The notes under the pieces: model-generated
What the model was told of the DNA's origin: nothing
Databases searched by the model: none
What the model saw: only the letters and a program-made list of their open reading frames with translations
Shown here: positions 16,823 to 64,000 of the stretch, one piece after another
Position numbering within the stretch: position 1 is the first letter of the stretch
Layout of the letters: each line of letters begins with the position of its first letter
DNA from: Piromyces finnis finn
Taxonomy: Eukaryota; Fungi; Neocallimastigomycota
Length of the DNA stretch: 64,000 nucleotides
Assembly (NCBI GenBank): GCA_002104945.1
Contig: MCFH01000007.1
Span: forward strand, 558,001-622,000
Direction of reading: 5' to 3'
Program-made: the position numbers and the translations under genes

Positions 16823-16836
16823 AAAAGCTTAATAAA
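16823..16836 (+). repeat. Left target-site duplication of the SINE (AAAAGCTTAATAAA)
   Basis: Identical to 17395-17408 and directly abuts the T23 tail. Confidence 0.9.
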
Positions 16837-17394
16837 TTTTTTTTTTTTTTTTTTTTTTTAACGTCCGAGTGCATTTCTCCCATCGATCAGAGTTAGCTCC
16901 AATGGTGGTTCTTAGAGAAACGTTGGCTCATTCCTATTGCTAGGTGGTTGTGACCCTCCTGGTCTGTCATACTGTTTCTTCAGCTTCGACGCTCACTTAA
17001 TCCATGTACATTAGATGCATGTCGTTGTACGATATTTCACAACTACAATGCTAAGCCTCTTATAGTCAATTTGATCACGTGTCAACCGCCCCCTAATGTT
17101 TACACTTAAATTGATTAAGGAATATTATGTGTTTTTGGCATAGCCTAAGTCACCACTTATTAAGTTCTAATTTGGAATGTACCATGTACACTAGACCCTC
17201 TCAGGCCGGCTAGACGAGTGTTATTATCATAGTAGTAAATTAGAAAGTTCATTTATACTTACCTGAATATCATAACCCAACCCATGGCAAACCCAGTGGG
17301 AAAATCCACAGGCACTGACATCTGCGGGGTCGAACCAGAAGCCTTATGTATGCTAAGGAAACGCCTTAACAACCAGGATAAAAACTGGAACGAC
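16837..17394 (-). mobile_element. Non-autonomous retroposon (SINE-like), 558 bp, tRNA-like head, LINE-related 3' segment, poly(A) tail
   Basis: GC-elevated island in very AT-rich intergenic DNA. T23 run at 16837-16859 is the poly(A) tail on the minus strand. Exact 14-bp direct repeat AAAAGCTTAATAAA at 16823-16836 and 17395-17408. B-box GGTTCGACCCC near the 5' end. No long ORF. 50-nt similarity to the LINE ORF end at 59398-59450 and 61426-61478. Confidence 0.85.
17326..17380 (-). promoter_or_regulatory. Putative internal RNA polymerase III promoter of the SINE (B box plus degenerate A-box/D-loop)
   Basis: Minus-strand GGTTCGACCCC (17336-17326) matches the B-box GGTTCGANNCC. TATCCTGGTTGTTAAGGCG (17380-17362) resembles the tRNA D-arm ...AGTGGTTAAGGCG, but the A box is degenerate. 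Confidence 0.55.
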
Positions 17395-17408
17395 AAAAGC
17401 TTAATAAA
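17395..17408 (+). repeat. Right target-site duplication of the SINE (AAAAGCTTAATAAA)
   Basis: Identical to 16823-16836 and directly abuts the element 5' end (GTCGTTCC on the minus strand). Confidence 0.9.
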
Positions 17409-42102: not shown

Positions 42103-45100
42103 TTAAATAGAGTTTTCATGAATTAATTGTCCAATTTTATAACCATAATCTTCTTGGTAATTATTAGCATTAGCAAATTTAATATTATAATATAAATGAG
42201 GATCGAATAAATTGAAGAAAACATCATAGGTTTCATTGAAAAATTTAGAAAATAAACTTTCTAAATTAACCGATAGAACTATACTTTTATTTGAAACCCA
42301 ATCTCTATTGTCGGTATCAATATCTATGATGAAAACATCATTGGTGACGGTTGATTTAAATAAAAGCTCTGACTGGAAGTATTTATAGGCTGGAGCAAAA
42401 CCAATATTTTCTAGAGATATATTTATTGTATTATTTTCAAAGAAACTATCTCTTAAAACATATCTATAACCTAAATGATAATTCATATATTCTTCAGCTG
42501 TTACTTTATTCCAATTTGGTTGATAAATTTGTTTGCTAAAAGTAATATTCCATCGGTTAAAAATTAAGCGATCATATTCATCATTGTAATAAGATAGATG
42601 AATATTCTCGCTATGGTTTTCACAAACATAAAAGTTGTTATAATTATCTGGACTAGCAATGACCTTTTTAATATCTGATAATTCATAAATTTCCTCATAC
42701 TCATCATTTTTTATATTGGAAAGAACTTCTCCACCATTTGGTACCCTTAGACATAACTCTTTTTGAAAATCAACTTCATCTTTTCTTGGCATTTTTACAT
42801 AAAGTTTTTCTGTATCATCATTAAAGCAGGTAACAGCCACTTTACTATAAGTACCAGTATCTGTTTCGCTATAAAATAATCCATCATTATACAAACTTAG
42901 TCTTTTAATTAGTTCTTCATATTCTTTGCTACTTTTCTTTTTAATTTCATTAGTGATAGCTCTGTGATGACAAGGGGTTCTCACTGCTAAAAATATAGAA
43001 TTATCAAACTTTTCATTAATGGCTTCCATAATTTTAGTATTTGAAATTAAGGATGTAGCATGTTTAGTACTATGCATTTCACCCCATCGACCAACAAAAA
43101 CTCCTTGATAAATATATATAACATCTTTATATTTATTAACTATACTTGAAAGTTGATCAATATGTGTTAAAATAGTATCAATATTTTCTGGTTCTTTATC
43201 TGTTGGACTGTATCTATAGCAATTACTTCCCTCAACCAAAGTAAATTTTCCATTTTCTCTTTTTGATAATTTAGAGGTTTGATTTGTTACTTTAATATCA
43301 TTTTTATCATTATTGCTAGCCATAATATTGCTTTTACTTAATACACTTTTCATATATTCAATATCTTTATTTGTTATATATTCTTCACCATTATCTAATT
43401 CTTTTTTTACAAATAATCTTTCTTCTAACACAGATGATGATGTTGATGATGATGATGATGATGACTTTGAACTTCCGCTATCATAATAAAATCTTAAAAT
43501 AATTTGGGTTGTTGGATCAATCTCTTCCTTTCTTTTTCTATATTCATTTAATAAATAATCTAAAAATTCTAGTGCTTTTGTGGAAATAGGTGAGTCATAA
43601 TATTCTGATAATCTAACACCTAAATATTGCAATCCTGTTTTACTTTTTCTTACCATACTAAAAGTATAGATAAAATTGCAATCAGTATCAGCACTGTCTG
43701 TTAAATCTATGGTGAAAGAACCATGGAAACAACCTCGATATGGATTTTGTAATTCATTAAAAGATTCTTTCATGACTTCAGGTTTATATTTTGTATTTTC
43801 TATACATGTGCCATAATCTAATTGACAATTGTTTGAGAGAGCGCAATAAGAAAATGTTTTTCCACAAAATCCATCTTTACTACAACAATGACCTGAAGGG
43901 CATTTACCATATCCCGGTCCACATTTACAGTTTCCAAATTCAGATTGGCAATTATTGGAAATTAAACAATATGCATCAGTTGTACCACAATATCCTTTTG
44001 CACTGCAACAATGATTAGAGTTACAAATACCATTGTCTCCACTACATTTACATGTTCCAAATTCTGGTTGACATCCTTTAGCTGAGGAACAGTAACTTGT
44101 TGTCTTTCCACAATATCCTTTTGCACTACAACATTGATTAGTACCACAACTACCAAAAGTACTACCACATCTACAATCACCATATTCAGATTGGCAACCA
44201 TTAGAAGTAGAGCAATATTCTTCTGTTTTTCCACAGAATCCATCCTTACCACAACATTGACCTGAAGGGCATTTACCATATTCAGGTCCACATTTACAGT
44301 TTCCAAATTCAGATTGACAATTATTAGAAATTAAACAATATGCAGCAGTTGTACCACAATATCCTTTTGCACTGCAACATTGATTAGTACCACAACTACC
44401 AAAAGTACTACCACATCTACAATCACCATATTCAGATTGGCAACCATTAGAAGTAGAACAATATTCTTCTGTTTTTCCACAGAATCCATCTTTACTACAA
44501 CATTGACCTGAAGGGCATTTACCATATTCAGGTCCACATTTACAGTTTCCAAATTCAGATTGACAGTTATTAGATGCTGAGCAGTATGCAGCAGTTGCAC
44601 CACAATATCCTTTTGCACTGCAACAATGATTAGAGTTACAAATACCATTGTCTCCACTACATTTACATGTTCCAAATTCTGGTTGACATCCTTTAGCTGA
44701 GGAACAGTAACTTGTTGTCTTTCCACAATATCCTTTTGCACTACAACATTGATTAGTACCACAACTACCAAAAGTACTACCACATCTACAATCACCATAT
44801 TCAGATTGGCAACCATTAGAAGTAGAGCAATATTCTTCTGTTTTTCCACAGAATCCATCCTTACCACAACATTGACCTGAAGGGCATTTACCATATTCAG
44901 GTCCACATTTACAGTTTCCAAATTCAGATTGACAATTATTAGAAATTAAACAATATGCAGCAGTTGTACCACAATATCCTTTTGCACTGCAACATTGATT
45001 AGTACCACAACTACCAAAAGTACTACCACATCTACAATCACCATATTCAGATTGGCAACCATTAGAAGTAGAACAATATTCTTCTGTTTTTCCACAGAAT

Positions 45101-45462
45101 CCATCCTTACCACAACATTGACCTGAGGGGCATTTACCATATCCCGGCCCACATTTACATTTTCCAAATTCAGATTGACAGTTATTAGATGCTGAGCAGT
45201 ATGCAGCAGTTGCACCACAATATCCTTTTGCACTGCAACAATGATTAGAGTTACAAATACCATTGTCTCCACTACATTTACATGTTCCAAATTCTGGTTG
45301 ACATCCTTTAGCTGAGGAACAGTAACTTGTTGTCTTTCCACAATATCCTTTTGCGCTACAACATTGACCTGTAGGGCAATTACCATACCCTTCTCCGCAT
45401 TTTAAAGCATGAGTAATTGAAATAAATAATATAAATATACATATATATATTGTTACTTTCAT
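42103..45462 (-). CDS. Secreted protein: signal peptide + 13 hevein/CBM18 chitin-binding modules + DUF4874/DUF4832-like (putative glycoside-hydrolase-fold) domain; intronless
   Basis: Hydrophobic leader MKVTIYICIFILFISITHA. Thirteen 41-aa 8-Cys modules of the form CG..yG.C...qCCS..GyCG.T..YC.....CQ.efG.C. C-terminal motifs NPYRG, IILRFYYD, QGVFVGRWGEMH, AVRTP, LYNDG...DTGTY, NGGE, HLGYRYVL and LENIGFAP were recognised from bacterial DUF4874/DUF4832 proteins (motif recall, not a search). Confidence 0.85.
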   Translation of the reverse strand: MKVTIYICIFILFISITHALKCGEGYGNCPTGQCCSAKGYCGKTTSYCSSAKGCQPEFGTCKCSGDNGICNSNHCCSAKGYCGATAAYCSASNNCQSEFGKCKCGPGYGKCPSGQCCGKDGFCGKTEEYCSTSNGCQSEYGDCRCGSTFGSCGTNQCCSAKGYCGTTAAYCLISNNCQSEFGNCKCGPEYGKCPSGQCCGKDGFCGKTEEYCSTSNGCQSEYGDCRCGSTFGSCGTNQCCSAKGYCGKTTSYCSSAKGCQPEFGTCKCSGDNGICNSNHCCSAKGYCGATAAYCSASNNCQSEFGNCKCGPEYGKCPSGQCCSKDGFCGKTEEYCSTSNGCQSEYGDCRCGSTFGSCGTNQCCSAKGYCGTTAAYCLISNNCQSEFGNCKCGPEYGKCPSGQCCGKDGFCGKTEEYCSTSNGCQSEYGDCRCGSTFGSCGTNQCCSAKGYCGKTTSYCSSAKGCQPEFGTCKCSGDNGICNSNHCCSAKGYCGTTDAYCLISNNCQSEFGNCKCGPGYGKCPSGHCCSKDGFCGKTFSYCALSNNCQLDYGTCIENTKYKPEVMKESFNELQNPYRGCFHGSFTIDLTDSADTDCNFIYTFSMVRKSKTGLQYLGVRLSEYYDSPISTKALEFLDYLLNEYRKRKEEIDPTTQIILRFYYDSGSSKSSSSSSSTSSSVLEERLFVKKELDNGEEYITNKDIEYMKSVLSKSNIMASNNDKNDIKVTNQTSKLSKRENGKFTLVEGSNCYRYSPTDKEPENIDTILTHIDQLSSIVNKYKDVIYIYQGVFVGRWGEMHSTKHATSLISNTKIMEAINEKFDNSIFLAVRTPCHHRAITNEIKKKSSKEYEELIKRLSLYNDGLFYSETDTGTYSKVAVTCFNDDTEKLYVKMPRKDEVDFQKELCLRVPNGGEVLSNIKNDEYEEIYELSDIKKVIASPDNYNNFYVCENHSENIHLSYYNDEYDRLIFNRWNITFSKQIYQPNWNKVTAEEYMNYHLGYRYVLRDSFFENNTINISLENIGFAPAYKYFQSELLFKSTVTNDVFIIDIDTDNRDWVSNKSIVLSVNLESLFSKFFNETYDVFFNLFDPHLYYNIKFANANNYQEDYGYKIGQLIHENSI
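43804..45402 (-). repeat. Coding tandem array of 13 x 123-bp CBM18 units with a 615-bp (5-unit) higher-order period
   Basis: The marker AATACCATTGTCTCCACTAC recurs at 44026, 44641 and 45256, a spacing of 615 = 5 x 123. Confidence 0.9.
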
Positions 45463-56127: not shown

Positions 56128-56899
56128 AAAATTCAATTTTAATTATAATTTATTTTTGTTTTATATTATATAAAGTAAATTTTTAAATACTTTATAATTT
56201 ATTCATTTTTTAAGTATTAAAGAAAAGGAAACAATTTTAATTATTTAAGATATGAAAATATTTTTGTAAAAATATCAAAACAACAGAAAAAAGAAAAAAG
56301 ACAAAAAAAAAAAAAAGATAAAATATATAGTTAAGGATTAAAATTTTTTTTAAAAATATATCTTTTAATATTTACAACGTTTAATATTATTGAAAGGAAA
56401 TAAAAAATAACTTGAAGATTTAATATATTCTTTTAAATATTAATGTATATATTAAAAATCATTAATTTCATTATTGTAAGTAAAAAAAAATAGGCAATAT
56501 AAAACAAATTATTTAAAAGAATAATAATTTCTCTTCAAAATAATTTTTTAATTTCCTGAAAATGTTTTATAGAAAAATAAAAAAAGATAATTTAAGAAAA
56601 ATATAAATCCTTAATTAAAATTTTTTTTTTTTTTTAATGTCAGAAATATTTGAAGTATTTTAAATAATTTATTAGTTTCTATTTTCTTTTTACATTTTAT
56701 GTAACTATTTACTTTTTTATTATTAAAAATGTAAATTATTTTAATTATTCGTTTTTATTTACATATTTTAAATTAAATAAATAAAAAAATAAAAAAAATT
56801 TATATATTATATGTGTATGTGTTAAAATAATTATATTCGTCAATTTATAAAAAATTTATGTAATATTCAATTAAAAAATGATTATTTTATTGTGAATAA

Positions 56900-59712
56900 C
56901 TAGATGTGTGGCATGATCATTTCGAAAACCTTGCATCAGATCCAAGTGGTGTAAGTCTTGATTTGGAGCATTGGTATGAAGAACCAACGAATAAACGTTT
57001 TTCACTTCCTATGCTTGATGAGTGGGATATCAACCAAGATATTAGTATTGATGAAGTCAAGTCAGCTATCCTCACTACTCCAAATTATAAAGCATCAGGT
57101 CCGGATGGTATTCCAATTGAATTTTACAAAGCATTAGTTCCATCAAGTAATGATTCTAATAATGCTACAGATAATAATTCTTCTGGTAATACTACTTCAG
57201 ATAATGATGCTCATGGTTTAAATTTTATTCTTAAATTATTCAACCGTATTTGGGATGGAGATTTCCCCAACTCATGGAATGAATCCAGTATTGTTTCTAT
57301 TCCTAAGAAGGGAGATTTGACAGATTGTGATAACTATCGAGGTATATCACTTATCAATAATGGTATTAAGTTGATTTCCAAAATTGTCACCACTAGAATC
57401 TCAGAATATGGTTTAAAGAATAATTTCATTAGACCTGAACAATTTGGTTTTCGAAAAAAGGAAGAAAGTATTAGTCTTTTCATTTCAATCCAAGAAATAT
57501 GCCGTAGACGTCAATTAGATAATAAAGAGACATATTTGGCCTTTTTAGATCTCAGGAAAGCATACGATTCAGTCCCAATCGGTAATATTCTCCATAAATT
57601 AGATTGTTTAGGAATCCGAGGTAAGAGTCTACAATTTATCAAAAATTTATATTTAACATCTAAGGCTAATGTCAAATTAGATGGACAATTCTCGAAATCT
57701 TTTGATGTGAAGAAAGGAGTCCGTCAAGGTTGCCCACTTTCGCCTATTCTTTTTAATCTCTTTATTAATGATATATTTAAAGAGTGTGAAGATCTCGGAG
57801 TCAGTTTAGGTGACACTCGATGCTGTGGTGGACTTTTTGCAGATGATATAGTTATTTGTGCTCCAACAAGAGGATGCTTAAAAAAGATGCTTAGAAGAGT
57901 TAATGAATGGGCCTTGTATAATGAAATGGAATTTGGTATCCAGAAATGTTCAACGATGGTGATTCGTCCTGAATCAATAGAAAATCAGAACAAGAGAGAT
58001 CCAACATTTTACTTAGCAGGACAACCCATTCCAACTACTGACTGCTACACTTATCTTGGTGTTCCATTTGATAAGAATCTGTCCCTTAAACCAGTAATTA
58101 AAGCTCTTAATAACAAGGTTTTGAAAGGGCTTTTCTCAGTCAGTAAATTCTTAAGAAATCCTAATATTCCTATTCCTTTCAAAAAACTAGTACTTAACTC
58201 TCAAGTGATTAGCAGAGTTTCATACTTTGCACCATTACTTGGATCCAACAAAGCTAGGTCTAGGATTGCTCAGAAGCATGTTAACAAAGGAATACGATGG
58301 GTTGCCGGAGTTCATAAAGCTGTATCGTTTATATCTTTATACTCTATTTCAAAAGATTTGAATATTCCTCCATTGTCAGCCAAATGTGCGTTAGCTCAGG
58401 TTAGATGTTTTAACAAATGGAAAAACTCAAATTGTATTATCTCACACCTTGTCAATTACATTCCTAAATTTAGAAAATACACGTGGTGCAAATCAAGTAG
58501 GACACTTGATAAAAAACTAAAGAAACATGGAGATGTTAAAGCAGTTAAAAACTTTTATTGGAAAGATCTCAAAGGGAATTCAATCAAAGCGCAATATTAT
58601 GATGATAATAAATTTATTGAAACTAAAGATTTTATTAAATTATGTTATGAATACCCAGAGTTTGCCTATGGCTTCTACTGGCTATTGAAAGCAAGAAGCG
58701 GATACAAGTTGGATGCTAGAGTTGCCAAAGCTGCTAAATTTGTTGATCCAATTTGTCCTAACTACTGTCCATGTTGCAAGTGTGGTGTTCAAAGTATTAA
58801 ACATTGGTTATTAGATTGTCCAACATTTAGAGATATCCGTATTAAACATTATGATTCCATAGTCCAGCTATTAAATTTTTTCAGTCAACGTAATTCCAAT
58901 AGTCCTATCAATAATAATGAAATTGATAATGTCAGTAGAGATAGCAATAACAGTAATAGTAATAGTAACAATAATAATAATAACAATAGTAATAATAACA
59001 ATAGTAGTAATAGTAATAATAGAAATAGTAATAATAACAATAGTAGTAATAGAAATAATAATATTAATAATGATAGCAATAGTGAAGATAATAATTCTAA
59101 TTTAGATAGTAATTTAGTTAATGATAGTAATAGTTCTAATAATCCGGTGAATATTAATGTGTATGATTATTCTAGTGTGTGCAGTAAAATATTTAAATTC
59201 CTTCTTGGGGGAAGAAGTTTTAACAATATTAATTACAATTCAAGGGAATGGAAAGAACTTTGTAAGCGTCAGATTCAATCTGGTACTAATGAAGGAGCAC
59301 CATTCTTGACGGTAACCGCGGAACTTCTAACCAAAATCATGCCTTTTGCTATTGGCCAGCAATGGTCAATGTTCAAAAGGTTTGAAGCAACATCCAAGAG
59401 CGTCAATGCTGAAGAAACAGTAAGACAGGCCAGGAGGGCCAGCGCAACCAATGGAGATCATAATTTTGTCCCATGATAAAATTTTGATCTTTGGCTCGGT
59501 GTCCCATTGGAAGTCAAATACAATTATTATACTTTAGTATGATAGTGGCTTTCTTACTTTAATTAAAATTACTAGAATACATTATACCCAGTTTTTATTC
59601 ATTTGTGTTTATTTAAACATATTTTTTTTATTTTTATTTTTATTTTTAATTTTTTATTACATGTATTATAATTTTAATTAAATTAATAATAAAGTTTAAA
59701 ATATTTGATGCC

Positions 59713-59749
<37 letters not shown>
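56900..59749 (+). mobile_element. Non-LTR retrotransposon (LINE) copy 1, 5'-truncated, RT + CCHC, A34 tail
   Basis: The frame is open from 56900 to TGA at 59476. RT motifs: KASGPDGIP, SIPKKGDLTDCDNYRGISL, QFGFR, FLDLRKAYDSV, GVRQGCPLSPILFNLFIND, LFADD, YTYLGV. Zinc knuckle CPCCKC...HWLLDC. A ~240-nt 3' UTR is followed by poly(A) at 59716-59749. Confidence 0.92.
56906..59476 (+). CDS. LINE reverse transcriptase (N-terminally truncated, intact frame, 856 aa)
   Basis: See RT motifs above. The GTG start is only the truncation point, not a true initiation codon. Confidence 0.85.
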   Translation: MWHDHFENLASDPSGVSLDLEHWYEEPTNKRFSLPMLDEWDINQDISIDEVKSAILTTPNYKASGPDGIPIEFYKALVPSSNDSNNATDNNSSGNTTSDNDAHGLNFILKLFNRIWDGDFPNSWNESSIVSIPKKGDLTDCDNYRGISLINNGIKLISKIVTTRISEYGLKNNFIRPEQFGFRKKEESISLFISIQEICRRRQLDNKETYLAFLDLRKAYDSVPIGNILHKLDCLGIRGKSLQFIKNLYLTSKANVKLDGQFSKSFDVKKGVRQGCPLSPILFNLFINDIFKECEDLGVSLGDTRCCGGLFADDIVICAPTRGCLKKMLRRVNEWALYNEMEFGIQKCSTMVIRPESIENQNKRDPTFYLAGQPIPTTDCYTYLGVPFDKNLSLKPVIKALNNKVLKGLFSVSKFLRNPNIPIPFKKLVLNSQVISRVSYFAPLLGSNKARSRIAQKHVNKGIRWVAGVHKAVSFISLYSISKDLNIPPLSAKCALAQVRCFNKWKNSNCIISHLVNYIPKFRKYTWCKSSRTLDKKLKKHGDVKAVKNFYWKDLKGNSIKAQYYDDNKFIETKDFIKLCYEYPEFAYGFYWLLKARSGYKLDARVAKAAKFVDPICPNYCPCCKCGVQSIKHWLLDCPTFRDIRIKHYDSIVQLLNFFSQRNSNSPINNNEIDNVSRDSNNSNSNSNNNNNNNSNNNNSSNSNNRNSNNNNSSNRNNNINNDSNSEDNNSNLDSNLVNDSNSSNNPVNINVYDYSSVCSKIFKFLLGGRSFNNINYNSREWKELCKRQIQSGTNEGAPFLTVTAELLTKIMPFAIGQQWSMFKRFEATSKSVNAEETVRQARRASATNGDHNFVP

Positions 59750-59751
<2 letters not shown>

Positions 59752-61741
59752 ACAATTCTCGAAATCTTTTGATGTGAAGAAAGGAGTCCGTCAAGGTTGC
59801 CCTCTTTCTCCTATTCTCTTTAATCTCTTTATTAATGATATATTTAGAGAGTGCGAAGATCTAGGAGTCAGTTTAGGTGACACTCGATGCTGTGGTGGAC
59901 TTTTTGCAGATGATATAGTTATTTGTGCTCCAACAAGAGGATGCTTAAAAAAGATGCTTAGAAGAGTTAATGAATGGGCATTGTATAATGAAATGGAATT
60001 TGGTATCCAGAAATGTTCAACGATGGTGATTCGTCCTGAATCAATAGAAAATCAGAACAAGAGAGATCCAACATTTTACTTAGCAGGACAACCCATTCCA
60101 ACTACTGATTGCTATACTTATCTTGGTGTTCCATTTGATAAGAATCTGTCCCTTAAACCAGTAATTAAAGCTCTTAATAACAAGGTTTTGAAAGGGCTTT
60201 TCTCAGTCAGTAAATTCTTAAGAAATCCTAATATTCCTATTCCTTTCAAAAAACTAGTACTTAACTCACAAGTGATTAGCAGAGTTTCATACTTTGCACC
60301 ATTACTTGGATCCAACAAAGCTAGGTCTAGGATTGCTCAGAAGCATGTTAACAAAGGAATACGATGGGTTGCCGGAGTTCATAAAGCTGTATCGTTTATA
60401 TCTTTATACTCTATTTCAAAAGATTTGAATATTCCTCCATTGTCAGCCAAATGTGCGTTAGCTCAGGTTAGATGTTTTAACAAATGGAAAAACTCAAATT
60501 GTATTATCTCACACCTTGTCAATTACATTCCTAAATTTAGAAAATACACGTGGTGCAAATCAAGTAGGACACTTGATAAAAAATTAAAGAAACATGGAGA
60601 TGTTAAAGCAGTTAAAAACTTTTATTGGAAAGATCTCAAAGGGAATTCAATCAAAGCGCAATATTATGATGATAATAAATTTATTGAAACTAAAGATTTT
60701 ATTAAATTATGTTATGAGTACCCAGAGTTTGCCTATGGCTTCTACTGGCTATTGAAAGCAAGAAGCGGATACAAGTTGGATGCTAGAGTTGCCAAAGCTG
60801 CCAAATTTGTTGATCCAGTTTGTCCTAACTACTGTCCATGTTGCAAGTGTGGAGATCAAAGTATTAAACATTGGTTATTAGATTGTCCAACATTTAGAGA
60901 TATCCGTATTAAACATTATGATTCTATAGTCCATCTATTAAATTTTTTCAGTCAACGTAATTCCAATAGTCCTATCAATAATAATGAAAATGTTAATATC
61001 AGCAGAGATAGCAATAACAGTAATAGTAATAGTAATAATATTAATAATAACAATAGTAATAATAACAATAGTAGTAATAGAAATAATAATATTAGTAATG
61101 ATAGCAATAGTGATGATAATAATTCTAATTTAGATAGTAATTTAGTTGATGATAGTAATAGTTCTAATAATCCGGTGAATATTAATGTGTATGATTATTC
61201 TAGTGTGTGCAGTAAAATATTTAAATTCCTTCTTGGGGGAAGAAGTTTTAACAATATTAATTACAATTCAAGGGAATGGAAAGAACTTTGTAAGCGTCAG
61301 ATTCAATCTGGTACTAATGAAGGAACACCATTCTTGACGGTAACCGCGGAACTTCTAACCAAAATCATGCCTTTTGCTATTGGCCAGCAATGGTCAATGT
61401 TCAAAAGGTTTGAAGCAACATCCAAGAGCGTCAATGCTGAAGAAACAGTAAGACAGGCCAGGAGGGCCAGCGCAACCAATGGAGATCATAATTTTGTCCC
61501 ATGATAAAATTTTGATCTTTGGCTCGGTGTCCCATTGGAAGTCAAATACAATTATTATACTTTAGTATGATAGTGGCTTTGTTACTTTAATTAAAATTAC
61601 TAGAATACATTATACCCAATTTTTATTCATTTGTGTTTATTTAAACATATTTTTTTTATTTTTATTTTTATTTTTTTATTTTTTATTACATGTATTATAA
61701 TTTTAATTAAATTAATAATAAAGTTTAAAATATTTGATGAC

Positions 61742-61782
<41 letters not shown>
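59750..61782 (+). mobile_element. LINE copy 2, same family, more strongly 5'-truncated, A38 tail
   Basis: Begins GGACAATTCTCGAAATC, equivalent to 57683 of copy 1, directly after copy 1's poly(A). Near-identical protein to TGA 61504, the same 3' UTR, and poly(A) at 61745-61782. Confidence 0.92.
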
Positions 61783-61785
<3 letters not shown>

Positions 61786-62143
61786 TCATGCTCATGGTAC
61801 TGAGAGAGTAGAAAGAATTAAATCCAAGTATTGCGCAATGGATGCTTGGTGCCCTCTTGGGAACGTGCCTTCATTTATTTAATAATGGAGTTTATCAAGG
61901 GGGTCTACTCATGCTCATGGTACTGAGAGAGTAGAAAGAATTAAATCCAAGTATTGCGCAATGGATGCTTGGTGCCCTCTTGGGAACGTGCCTTCATTTA
62001 TTTAATAAATGGAGTTTCTCAAGGGGGACTACTCATGCTCATGGTACTGAGAAAGTATAAAGAATTAAATCCAAGTATTGCGCAATGGATGCTTGGTTAG
62101 TCTTTAAAGGAAAATTATTAGGACTAAGCTCATGGTACTGAGC
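61783..62143 (+). repeat. Tandem 123/124-bp monomers at the 5' end of the third LINE (2 full, 1 partial, 1 remnant)
   Basis: TACTCATGCTCATGGTACTGAG... starts at 61783, 61906 and 62030 (partial to 62096). A GCTCATGGTACTGAG remnant lies at 62128-62142. Confidence 0.9.
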
Positions 62144-62742
62144 GATTAAAAAACATTTTATTCATCGAATTTAAGTATTTGATGAATAAGTTGAATGTTT
62201 GATATTCAGGTAAGTTTGTATAGTATTTTATTAGAAGAGTATTACATTTTGTTGCTGTATTTTTTCTTTTATTCATGTATTCATGTAGTACTACTCTTCT
62301 CTTGTAAGAATCCAATGTAGTCAACTTTAGCATTTGCATTGTATTTTTATATTCATGTAGCTATTGTTGTATTGTTTCTTGTAAGAGACTGATTCACTCT
62401 ACATCATGTAAAAATACTATTCACAAGCTTTCTGGTGTCGACATTCTTGATTCAAATTTTTTACCAATTTAAATATTTAATGAAAAGTAAAGTCAAACAA
62501 TTTTAGTGTCAAAAAGCGAATCGAATTTACTAACAACAAACCAAAACTAGAATTTTTAAAGAAAATTTACAACTAGAATTCAAAAAAAAAGAAACTTTAA
62601 ACAAAGCATCGTAACAATTTTTGTTCTATCCAGTACTTTTAAGAAGAGAGAGAGAGACAGATTTTTTTCCATATACGTTATATTTGTAATTTTTATTAGT
62701 ATTTATTTTATATTCAATATTTTTTAATTAGAATTAATTATC

Positions 62743-63102
62743 ATGTCAGTCCTTTATATTAAAGATAAGAATTATATCAGACGTGGTACCCGGTCTTATG
62801 GTATCCCCTTAGATGATATTCGCTCCTTCTTTATCCGTGGTATTCGATCATGGTCAGTAAATATGCTATGGGAAAAACTCGAGGTTATTCTAGAAGATAA
62901 ATTTAATTCAGTTATTAGTGTTAAATATTTTCAGACTTTCAATGTTCACTTTTTCTTAGTCAAGGTTCATGGTTCATCGAAAGATTGTATTAAAATCTTA
63001 CACATGTTAAAGAAGAAACTTTCAGTTACCTCAATTTCCTTTTCAGCTCGTAGTAGAAGGAATCACAAATACACTTTTTCCACACTCAAACGTAAAATTT
63101 AA
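62743..63102 (+). CDS. LINE ORF1-like / N-terminal RRM-like domain (119 aa)
   Basis: The ATG ORF lies immediately upstream of the endonuclease frame. The pattern FFIRGI - helix - VISVKYF - HFFLVKV - helix - SISF fits an RRM beta-alpha-beta-beta-alpha-beta order by eye only. Confidence 0.5.
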   Translation: MSVLYIKDKNYIRRGTRSYGIPLDDIRSFFIRGIRSWSVNMLWEKLEVILEDKFNSVISVKYFQTFNVHFFLVKVHGSSKDCIKILHMLKKKLSVTSISFSARSRRNHKYTFSTLKRKI

Positions 63103-64000
63103 TTTCTAATAAACATCAACATTCTATTCAACAATCATTTCAACAATCAGTTCAACAATCTCATCAACAATCCGATCTTCAACAAGATCTTCAACAGGAT
63201 CTTCAACAGGATCTTCAACAAGTTTCCCATCATGAAAATATTCCAGATCTACAGCAAACACAATTTCAATCTCAACATTCAACAATTAATTCTAATAGCT
63301 CTATCAACTCTGATAACAGTTCAATAGTTGATAGTTCTTCAGTTTCACAGCCATCTAGTAATAGTTCTACTTATTCCTCTGATGCATCATCCATTAATAA
63401 CGATGACTTTAATAATAATAATAATAGCAACGATTCTTCCTCATCCAACAAGCCTGATAACTTTTCTTTTTGTCTTAGTTGGAACACCAATGGGTGGAAT
63501 CACGAAAAGAGAGATAGTATTAGCTATTTCACAGCTATTTTCAAACCATTATTTTTATGTTTCCAAGAAACTGGTAATGGTTCTGGATCGAATACAGATT
63601 ATCCTTGTCGTGTTACTTTGCGAAACTATAGACACTTTTTCAAGAAAGCTGACGAATCAGTTCCGGGAATGAGAGGTTTATATTTAGGTTTTCACAATTC
63701 GTGTCAAGCCTCACTTGAAAACTTCTCTGGAAAATATATTATTTCTATTTATACTTTTAGTCTCTGGAATAGATTCAAATGCTCGATTGGAAATGTTTAT
63801 ATGCCTCATAGTCATCACAACATCTATGTTGATCATGCAAAGTTAGAAGTTCGCTTGTGGTTACAAACTCATTCATCCCATCCATCGATTCTTGTTGGTG
63901 ATTTTAATATGTCTAAAGTAAAATTATCCAACTGGTTATCAACTAATGGATTAGGAGATTGGGAAATTCTTCCGCTTAGAGGGTCTACTATCTCTTGGAC
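63096..64000 (+). CDS. Gln/Ser/Asn-rich linker + apurinic/apyrimidinic-type endonuclease of the LINE (partial, not in the ORF track)
   Basis: Manual translation: NLISNKHQHSIQQSFQQ...(DLQQ)x4...FCLSWNTNGWNHEKR...CFQETG...GNVYMPH...ILVGDFNMS, with no stop to the window edge. The first ATG is at 63669, inside the domain. Confidence 0.85.

Follow-up and report, generated by a model that had tools for sequence, protein, structure and literature searches.

In the genome of the gut fungus Piromyces finnis, a short interspersed nuclear element (SINE) and a long interspersed nuclear element (LINE) have in common a single 50-nt module, which lies within the last codons of the LINE open reading frame (ORF) and, judged from its covariation among LINE lineages, is conserved as a sense-strand RNA fold of two hairpins. 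We examined this pair in a 64,000-nt stretch of contig MCFH01000007.1 (positions 558,001 to 622,000 of the forward strand, assembly GCA_002104945.1), which is referred to throughout as the window and has a G+C content of 21%. The SINE is mobile and abundant and carries the module intact. The module may serve as the handle by which the LINE protein recognizes its template RNA, and the SINE may exploit that handle.

The block common to the SINE and the LINE

A first-pass annotation of the window, made from the letters alone, had proposed that the SINE and two LINE copies share a segment whose differences preserve two stem-loops. The features compared are listed here in window coordinates.

16860..17394, minus strand: SINE body of 535 nt, starting GTCGTTCC and ending GGACGTT, without a long ORF
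16945..16994, minus strand: the SINE's copy of the 50-nt module, at nt 401-450 of the element and 85 nt before its poly(A), located by blastn to both LINE copies
16966..16990, minus strand: predicted hairpin 1 in the SINE (alignment columns 17-41), with outer stem GUC/GAC, an internal loop, inner stem GCUG/CAGU and loop AAGAAA
16952..16964, minus strand: predicted hairpin 2 in the SINE (alignment columns 43-55), GACC-AGGAG-GGUC
56894..59715, plus strand: LINE copy A, 5'-truncated, with ORF 56906-59476 and 3' untranslated region (UTR) 59477-59715, equivalent to ORF residues ~585-1385 of full-length relatives
59398..59450, plus strand: module in LINE copy A (hairpin 1 at 59402-59426, hairpin 2 at 59428-59440), ORF codons -26 to -9
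59750..61744, plus strand: LINE copy B, 5'-truncated, abutting the poly(A) of copy A, with ORF 59705-61504
61426..61478, plus strand: LINE copy B module, with the same sequence as in copy A

Within the window, blastn aligns SINE positions 16994-16945 (minus strand) with 59398-59450 and with 61426-61478 over 53 columns containing 5 mismatches and one 3-nt gap (45 of 50 nt identical, E 6e-11), and this block is the sole match of the SINE other than poly(A). Its ungapped 41-nt core gives E 3e-8 under short-query settings. The sequences of both blocks read exactly as the first-pass annotation had given them, and its placement of the five substitutions also holds: three fall in the internal loop of hairpin 1 and the other two form an A-U pair versus a G-C pair in hairpin 2. 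Its further statements, that the LINE segment overlaps the last codons of the reverse transcriptase (RT) ORF and that the SINE segment carries an in-frame TGA and is not kept for coding, are likewise borne out, the SINE reading GTA TGA in the LINE frame. The three unpaired differences between the SINE and LINE A sit in internal-loop columns that vary among LINEs, one of them making the stop codon, and the SINE keeps 11 of 11 stem pairs. By simple arithmetic, the chance of five random substitutions in 50 nt all missing the 22 stem positions is ~0.05. This comparison of the SINE with the window LINE is by itself weak evidence for structure, and LINE relatives were therefore collected for an analysis of covariation.

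Beyond the module the two elements are unrelated. The final 85 nt of the SINE align locally with the ~265 nt that follow the module in the LINE no better than shuffled sequences do, and comparison of the SINE body and tail with the LINE 5'UTR and 3'UTR gave nothing above shuffles. Between the module and the poly(A) lie 85 nt in the SINE, ~265 nt in the window LINE and ~195-460 nt in other LINE lineages. A better partner LINE was sought and rejected, as no fetched lineage matches the SINE tail past the module and the window LINE stays the best match. The SINE thus appears to have captured this one LINE module and nothing else from the LINE.

Two other candidate relationships were set aside. The word TGATATTCAGGTAAGT is common, 16/16, to SINE 17272-17257 (minus) and LINE 5'UTR 62200-62215 (plus), with E 0.007, and contains a perfect 5' splice-site/U1 complement, CAGGTAAGT, occurring at just these two places in the window (0.18 expected); as a further SINE-LINE homology it was rejected, being not significant in a shuffle test and absent from the other fetched loci. 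A long-range pairing of the 3' terminus (..GACGTT) with the 5' flank of the module (GAGCGTC) was dropped: its rank is good in the window SINE, LINE B and lineage L024, but poor in the other two SINE copies (GGAAGTT) and in most lineages.

Covariation and conservation of the fold

A protein search with the C-terminal half of the LINE ORF identified 25 relatives at 41-71% identity, nearly all of them ending TKSVNAE.TVRQASRASATN.DHNF. Nucleotide sequences came from three sources: a scan of metagenomes with a pattern that leaves all eight stem positions of hairpin 2 free, which gave 18 true LINE 3' ends; protein look-ups independent of any DNA pattern, which gave seven more; and P. finnis and Neocallimastix lanati loci, which gave four more. 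Two metagenome matches (L012 and L017) were rejected as chance, all others being LINE ends, and a pattern scan of viral contigs returned no match. The resulting alignment holds 21 distinct sequences, comprising 19 LINE lineages (from metagenomes, P. finnis and N. lanati), the window LINE and the SINE.

Across these 21 sequences 97.8% of stem cells are paired, versus 11.7-39.8% when the partners are slid by 1-3 columns, and the covariation score of 0.264, versus 0.102 in shuffles, was reached by 0 of 500 shuffles. The 12 sequences found without a DNA pattern behave in the same way (97.7% paired versus 10-38% slid), and RNAalifold, given no structure, returns the same two hairpins. Substitutions are not random relative to the proposed pairings; the LINE lineages respect them. 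The composition of the variable pairs, by alignment column, is as follows.

Hairpin 2, pair 43-55: GC in 12 sequences, GU in 4, AU in 3, AA in 2
Hairpin 2, pair 44-54: GC in 13, AU in 4, UA in 3, GU in 1
Hairpin 2, pair 45-53: CG in 16, AU in 3, UA in 2
Hairpin 2, pair 46-52: CG in 18, unpaired in 3
Hairpin 1, middle pair of the outer stem, 18-40: UA in 19, CG in 2 (L023 and L024, which are one lineage)

On these sequences the predicted hairpin 2 is well supported, three of its four pairs being covariant. The prediction of hairpin 1 is partially supported, by one covarying pair from one lineage together with frozen synonymous sites; its inner stem GCUG/CAGU is invariant in all 21 sequences. 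The cells include five variable G-U cells, and one G-U pair is invariant, with zero A-C cells in the 231 counted; since G-U occurs while A-C does not, the fold is assigned to the sense-strand RNA. In the most divergent lineage (L022, 43% identity) a different and stronger hairpin, GGAAGG-ACACGG-CCUUCU, is predicted at the place of hairpin 2.

This wider sampling alters one element of the first-pass annotation, which had read the A-U/G-C difference in hairpin 2 as a compensatory change. The A-U versus G-C pair is indeed seen, but it need not have arisen in the SINE: the GACC/GGUC stem (GACC/GGTC in DNA) also occurs in LINE lineages L006, L010, L011, L015, L020 and L026, and the SINE stem may therefore come from another LINE subfamily.

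The coding frame offers a separate view of what is conserved. In the ORF, the stems of hairpin 2 correspond to the codon after Q and the codon that follows two loop codons, which mostly encode S-R. The two flanking residues, tallied over 46 distinct C-terminal peptides, are A..A in 31, D..S in 4, V..T in 3, T..V in 2 and I..V in 1, the exceptions being singletons, and all five combinations represent codon pairs that are complementary at their first two positions; metagenome DNA adds the residue pairs S..D and V..I. The codons ACC AAG AGC GTC AAT, which the scan pattern did not fix, show a third-position identity of 84-88%, and the figure for the conserved block 10-75 codons upstream is 52%. 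Selection on the LINE module thus acts on the base pairs rather than on the peptide. Within the LINE 3' region, no nucleotide stretch is more conserved than the module.

The SINE family and its partner LINE

The boundaries of the SINE were set by three independent copies with differing flanks, one in the window and one in each of two other P. finnis loci (L028 and L029). Its remaining parts, and the one related insertion site in the window, are given below.

16837..16859, minus strand: SINE poly(A) tail of 23 A (direct reading)
17395..17408, minus strand: 5' copy of the 14-bp target-site duplication, TTTATTAAGCTTTT (direct reading)
16823..16836, minus strand: 3' copy of the 14-bp target-site duplication, TTTATTAAGCTTTT (direct reading)
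59219..59230, plus strand: empty counterpart of the L028 SINE insertion site, where LINE A of the window is uninterrupted, which provides a filled/empty site pair
17326..17336, minus strand: B-box-like GGTTCGACCCC in the SINE head (direct reading)

The copy in L028 (MCFH01000011.1) is identical at 534 of 535 positions (99.8%) and nested in a LINE copy, and this SINE with its poly(A) is bounded on both sides by the target-site duplication TTTAACAATATC. The copy in L029 (MCFH01000009.1) is 99.6% identical, with the duplication (A)TGGTTTTATATC. Across the three copies the duplications measure 14, 12 and 12-13 bp, each of different sequence, and the poly(A) runs comprise 21-40 A. The duplication around a full-length LINE in L028, (A)TTTCTTAAAAA, is 12-13 bp long and so of the same length class, and the SINE and the LINE have a common integration signature of poly(A) plus 12-14-bp duplications. 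The element is short, non-coding and multi-copy, with duplications, an A-rich 3' end and a region in common with a resident LINE, as befits a SINE. The family is young, its readable copies being at least 99.6% identical. The L028 copy alone has 20 extra bases, AGGGGCGTAAAAGAAAGAAG, between the 5' duplication and SINE base 1 (L028 10832-10851).

The abundance of the SINE was assessed in one DNA sequencing run (X2), in which 939 contig pieces are at least 80% alike on the SINE, 434 of the 939 being at least 99% alike. The possibility that the SINE is single-copy, or that its other copies do not have the segment, is contradicted by these pieces and by the L028 and L029 copies, in which the segment is present and, in the run, at the highest depth of the element. 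Summed word depth, which is not a copy number, increases from 220,000-320,000 in the SINE body to 400,000-485,000 in the tail and peaks at 660,000-715,000 in the module, versus 84-337 in unique flank; this suggests a family on the order of 10^3 copies, and the depth peak suggests that the module occurs in further elements too. Only two variants reach at least 5% in the module, 16963 T>C and 16987 C>T, each at 21%. The former is A>G in the RNA sense and changes A-U to G-U, and the latter lies in the internal loop, so that neither breaks a pair. About 21% of the X2 depth over the module has both variants, and the SINE stop-codon base is not among the listed variants; the joint variants suggest either a second subfamily of the SINE or a related element whose hairpin 2 contains G-U.

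SINE words are present in public sequencing runs of four organisms and in gut metagenomes. Contigs from the RNA libraries of three other organisms match 287-505 nt of the SINE without a single difference and end close to its termini, which establishes presence in RNA libraries, from which neither polymerase nor start site follows. In the two N. lanati loci (43 kb), LINE modules are present and no SINE was found. In the literature collection that was searched in full text, no paper on SINEs of Neocallimastigomycota came up.

The origin of the SINE head was considered separately. The motif GGTTCGACCCC fits the B-box consensus, GGTTCGANNCC, perfectly, and CTTAGCAT resembles, by eye, a tRNA-Ala anticodon loop. 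A tRNA origin is not confirmed by ARAGORN, which calls no tRNA in the head, or by Rfam, which gives no match at E up to 10. A T5 run at 17384-17380 (minus), 10 nt from the SINE 5' end, is awkward for an RNA polymerase III transcript.

The partner LINE is represented in the window by three copies arranged head to tail, which were delimited by tblastn with full-length relatives (P0003). In addition to the intervals given above, they comprise the following.

59716..59749, plus strand: poly(A) of LINE copy A
61745..61782, plus strand: poly(A) of LINE copy B
61783..64000, plus strand: LINE copy C, 5' part only, running off the window, with three ~123-nt monomers, the 5'UTR and the ORF start at 62743

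The ORF of LINE A encodes 856 aa with an RVT_1 match at E 8.5e-36 and has its stop at 59474-59476. Full-length relatives have a single ORF of ~1,380 aa, which starts at the 5' end and encodes an apurinic/apyrimidinic endonuclease (APE) domain (Exo_endo_phos; PF03372) and RVT_1 (PF00078), and a CCHC-like motif is present in the ORF. The APE endonuclease, RT, Cys-rich C-terminal region and poly(A) tail agree with the L1 clade by domain content. The best solved-structure match of the ORF is human L1 ORF2p (E 1e-29), among the few LINE clades with solved structures (only R2 besides among the matches). AATAAAG lies ~20-25 nt before the poly(A) in most LINE 3' ends readable to the poly(A). The attribution of the pair to a gut fungus in the first-pass annotation proved correct: the nearest named protein is from P. 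finnis (P0026, ORX54320.1, encoded at L028 and 95% identical to the LINE A C-terminus), as are the two further SINE loci.

Several other properties of the LINE were recorded. Following the module there is a third hairpin of up to 11 bp (59456-59489), which spans the stop codon by pairing the last codons, GAT CAT AAT TTT, with the beginning of the 3'UTR; the nearer lineages keep it, with scant covariation, and the SINE lacks it. LINE C opens (61783-62132) with three tandem ~123-nt units, two of them identical over 103 nt and one 71% alike; these units resemble mouse L1 promoter monomers, and the full-length LINE of L028 begins inside such a unit. LINE 3' ends stack head to tail on poly(A), as seen in copies A, B and C of the window, in L002 330-1073, where two tails lie 373 nt apart, and in L031 16370-16900, where three poly(A)-ended tail fragments occur in a row; this suggests a preference for insertion at A-runs. 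Elsewhere in the window, 43796-45448 is a tandem array of ~12-13 units of 123 nt, unrelated to the SINE/LINE module.

Proposed template recognition, its alternatives and related systems

In the explanation that we favor, the two-hairpin module would be a structured cis-acting RNA of the single-ORF APE and RT, poly(A)-ended LINEs of gut fungi, overlapping the last ~25 codons of their ORF. It would give the LINE protein a handle for selecting its template RNA: the protein would bind while the RNA refolds in the wake of the terminating ribosome, and priming of reverse transcription at the poly(A) would follow. A SINE showing the same handle 85 nt from its own poly(A) would be copied in trans. The position at the ORF end might, more speculatively, allow binding at protein release and so favor action in cis. 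We give about even chances to the proposal that the module is a template-recognition handle exploited by the SINE, because it is the only thing that the SINE took from the LINE and is useless there as coding sequence, and because no other nucleotide stretch of the LINE 3' region is as conserved, in elements with a common integration signature. What we infer from the sequences is that the LINE protein binds the fold and that the SINE needs it.

Several results weigh against this explanation. The module lies away from the 3' end, where the known RT-recognition stem-loops sit, and the AATAAA and poly(A) of the LINE tails suggest a relaxed, L1-like priming that needs no handle. Single-sequence folding is not significant (z -1.7 to -1.8): the isolated SINE 50-mer folds as two hairpins (-11.3 kcal/mol, z -1.8), and the hairpins are gone from the minimum free energy structure of the full-length SINE. 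The stems are short (3-4 bp), and the inner stem of hairpin 1 never varies and therefore gives no covariation evidence. The most divergent lineages, L022 and the second LINE of L031, still have a hairpin where hairpin 2 lies, but hairpin 1 is not clearly kept. The covariation evidence stems from LINE diversity, to which the SINE copies add nothing; the three readable copies are near-identical and therefore hold nothing that shows selection on the module within the SINE.

The alternative that we take most seriously, and regard as possible though rather unlikely, is that the module is a LINE RNA structure with a role other than template choice, such as ribosome pausing or termination control at the ORF end, RNA stability, export or silencing evasion, and that the SINE is a relic of a chimeric origin (e.g. 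template switching from LINE RNA) mobilized by its poly(A) alone. The location of the module in the ORF just before the stop codon agrees with such a role, as does the third LINE hairpin, which covers the stop codon after the module and is missing from the SINE; in addition, poly(A) terminates both elements, and in a SINE family this young the module could be retained without selection. Against this alternative, the SINE has exactly the module block with no LINE flank on either side and keeps 11 of 11 pairs despite 10% divergence from the nearest LINE. A translation-linked role would be useless in a non-coding SINE, and still no part of the SINE tail reaches a greater depth than the block in the DNA run.

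The other explanations are of much lower probability. Conservation at the DNA level, either as a palindromic site for protein binding or recombination or through gene conversion between SINE and LINE, with no RNA fold, would be compatible with short palindromes (GGCC...GGCC) that pair in DNA too and with SINE and LINE copies that nest in each other; we consider it improbable, as G-U is tolerated with no A-C in 231 cells, an asymmetry that fits sense-strand RNA only, and as ongoing conversion is at odds with a 10% divergence between the SINE and the nearest LINE module while SINE copies are at least 99.6% identical. It is less probable still that the block is kept solely for the C-terminal LINE peptide TKSVNAEETVRQASRASATN, with the hairpins a by-product and the SINE match an accident of origin. 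The peptide is indeed conserved down to 41% overall identity, but its non-synonymous changes come in RNA-complementary pairs (A..A, T..V, V..T, D..S, S..D), its synonymous sites are frozen, and the SINE has a stop codon yet keeps every pair. A chance similarity of 50 nt between the SINE and the LINE can practically be dismissed in view of E 6e-11 within the window, the recurrence of the block beside every LINE ORF end fetched, and a block G+C-richer than the 21% of the window, which makes a chance match less likely.

The choice of template by LINEs and its interception by SINEs are known in detail for few animal systems only. The Piromyces pair resembles human L1 and Alu in its poly(A) tails and 12-14-bp target-site duplications. 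Human L1 and Alu are not known to have a common sequence module, and Alu probably reaches ORF2p via SRP9/14 and the ribosome; the Piromyces SINE, in contrast, carries an RNA fold that derives from the LINE.

A close parallel is in monocots, where the L1-clade LINE1-1_ZM, maize ZmSINE2 and ZmSINE3 and sorghum SINEs have a ~50-nt common block containing a hairpin with compensatory changes (Ohshima 2012, PMC3472496), which was interpreted to mean that a LINE otherwise of the poly(A) type recognizes its template stringently (PMC3472496). Both systems combine a poly(A)-ending LINE with SINEs that carry a compensated hairpin block of ~50 nt. The monocot block, however, forms the last ~45-50 nt and lies in the 3'UTR, whereas the Piromyces module lies in the ORF with unrelated sequence downstream, has two hairpins and occurs in a fungal host.

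The likeness to eel UnaSINE1/UnaL2 that the first-pass annotation had drawn is a loose one. In the stringent-type systems of eel UnaL2/UnaSINE1 and zebrafish ZfL2, a stem-loop common to SINE and LINE is recognized by the LINE protein and needed for retrotransposition (PMC1636434, PMC4176376), and the Piromyces pair likewise has a conserved, covarying stem-loop RNA in common. The animal stem-loop sits in the 3' tail by short terminal repeats and the entire tail is common, whereas the Piromyces elements have an internal module only, in the ORF rather than in the 3' tail, and poly(A) ends. The Piromyces pair thus has the compensated stem-loop of the UnaL2 type, and neither its common 3' terminus nor its short tandem repeat ends.

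Among fungi, the passages on Aspergillus fumigatus AfuSINE2-1a and I-1_AF describe a tRNA-related SINE with 14-bp duplications whose 3' part is like the 3' region of a resident LINE-like element, and SINE and LINE copies that adjoin (PMC5063351). According to the same passages, these families have very low copy numbers, the similarity is to the 3'UTR and no covariation-supported structure is given, whereas the Piromyces SINE has ~10^3 copies and a covarying module inside the ORF. The Piromyces pair is a variant of the known theme of a stem-loop common to SINE and LINE, rather than the classic form, because the module is inside the ORF and not at the 3' terminus. Its departures from the known pairs are the internal position of the module in the ORF, the unrelated sequence downstream, the two hairpins and the high copy number.

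The full proposal, which we advance tentatively and hold to be somewhat doubtful as a whole, is that a poly(A)-type LINE picks its template by an internal two-hairpin handle in its last ORF codons, the fold dictating pairs of C-terminal amino acids, and that a SINE of about a thousand copies parasitizes it via this handle alone, far from the 3' end. If true, this would constitute a third mode of LINE template recognition beside the '3'-tail stringent' and 'poly(A) relaxed' modes and may offer a physical basis for cis-preference. The pair itself is a natural and apparently active SINE-LINE system in an early-diverging fungus, in which the common element is small, discrete and covariation-supported and lies at the end of an ORF rather than at the 3' terminus. 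With its complementary non-synonymous substitutions, the module also provides a clear example of RNA structure constraining protein evolution, and annotators of Neocallimastigomycota genomes gain a SINE family of roughly 10^3 copies.

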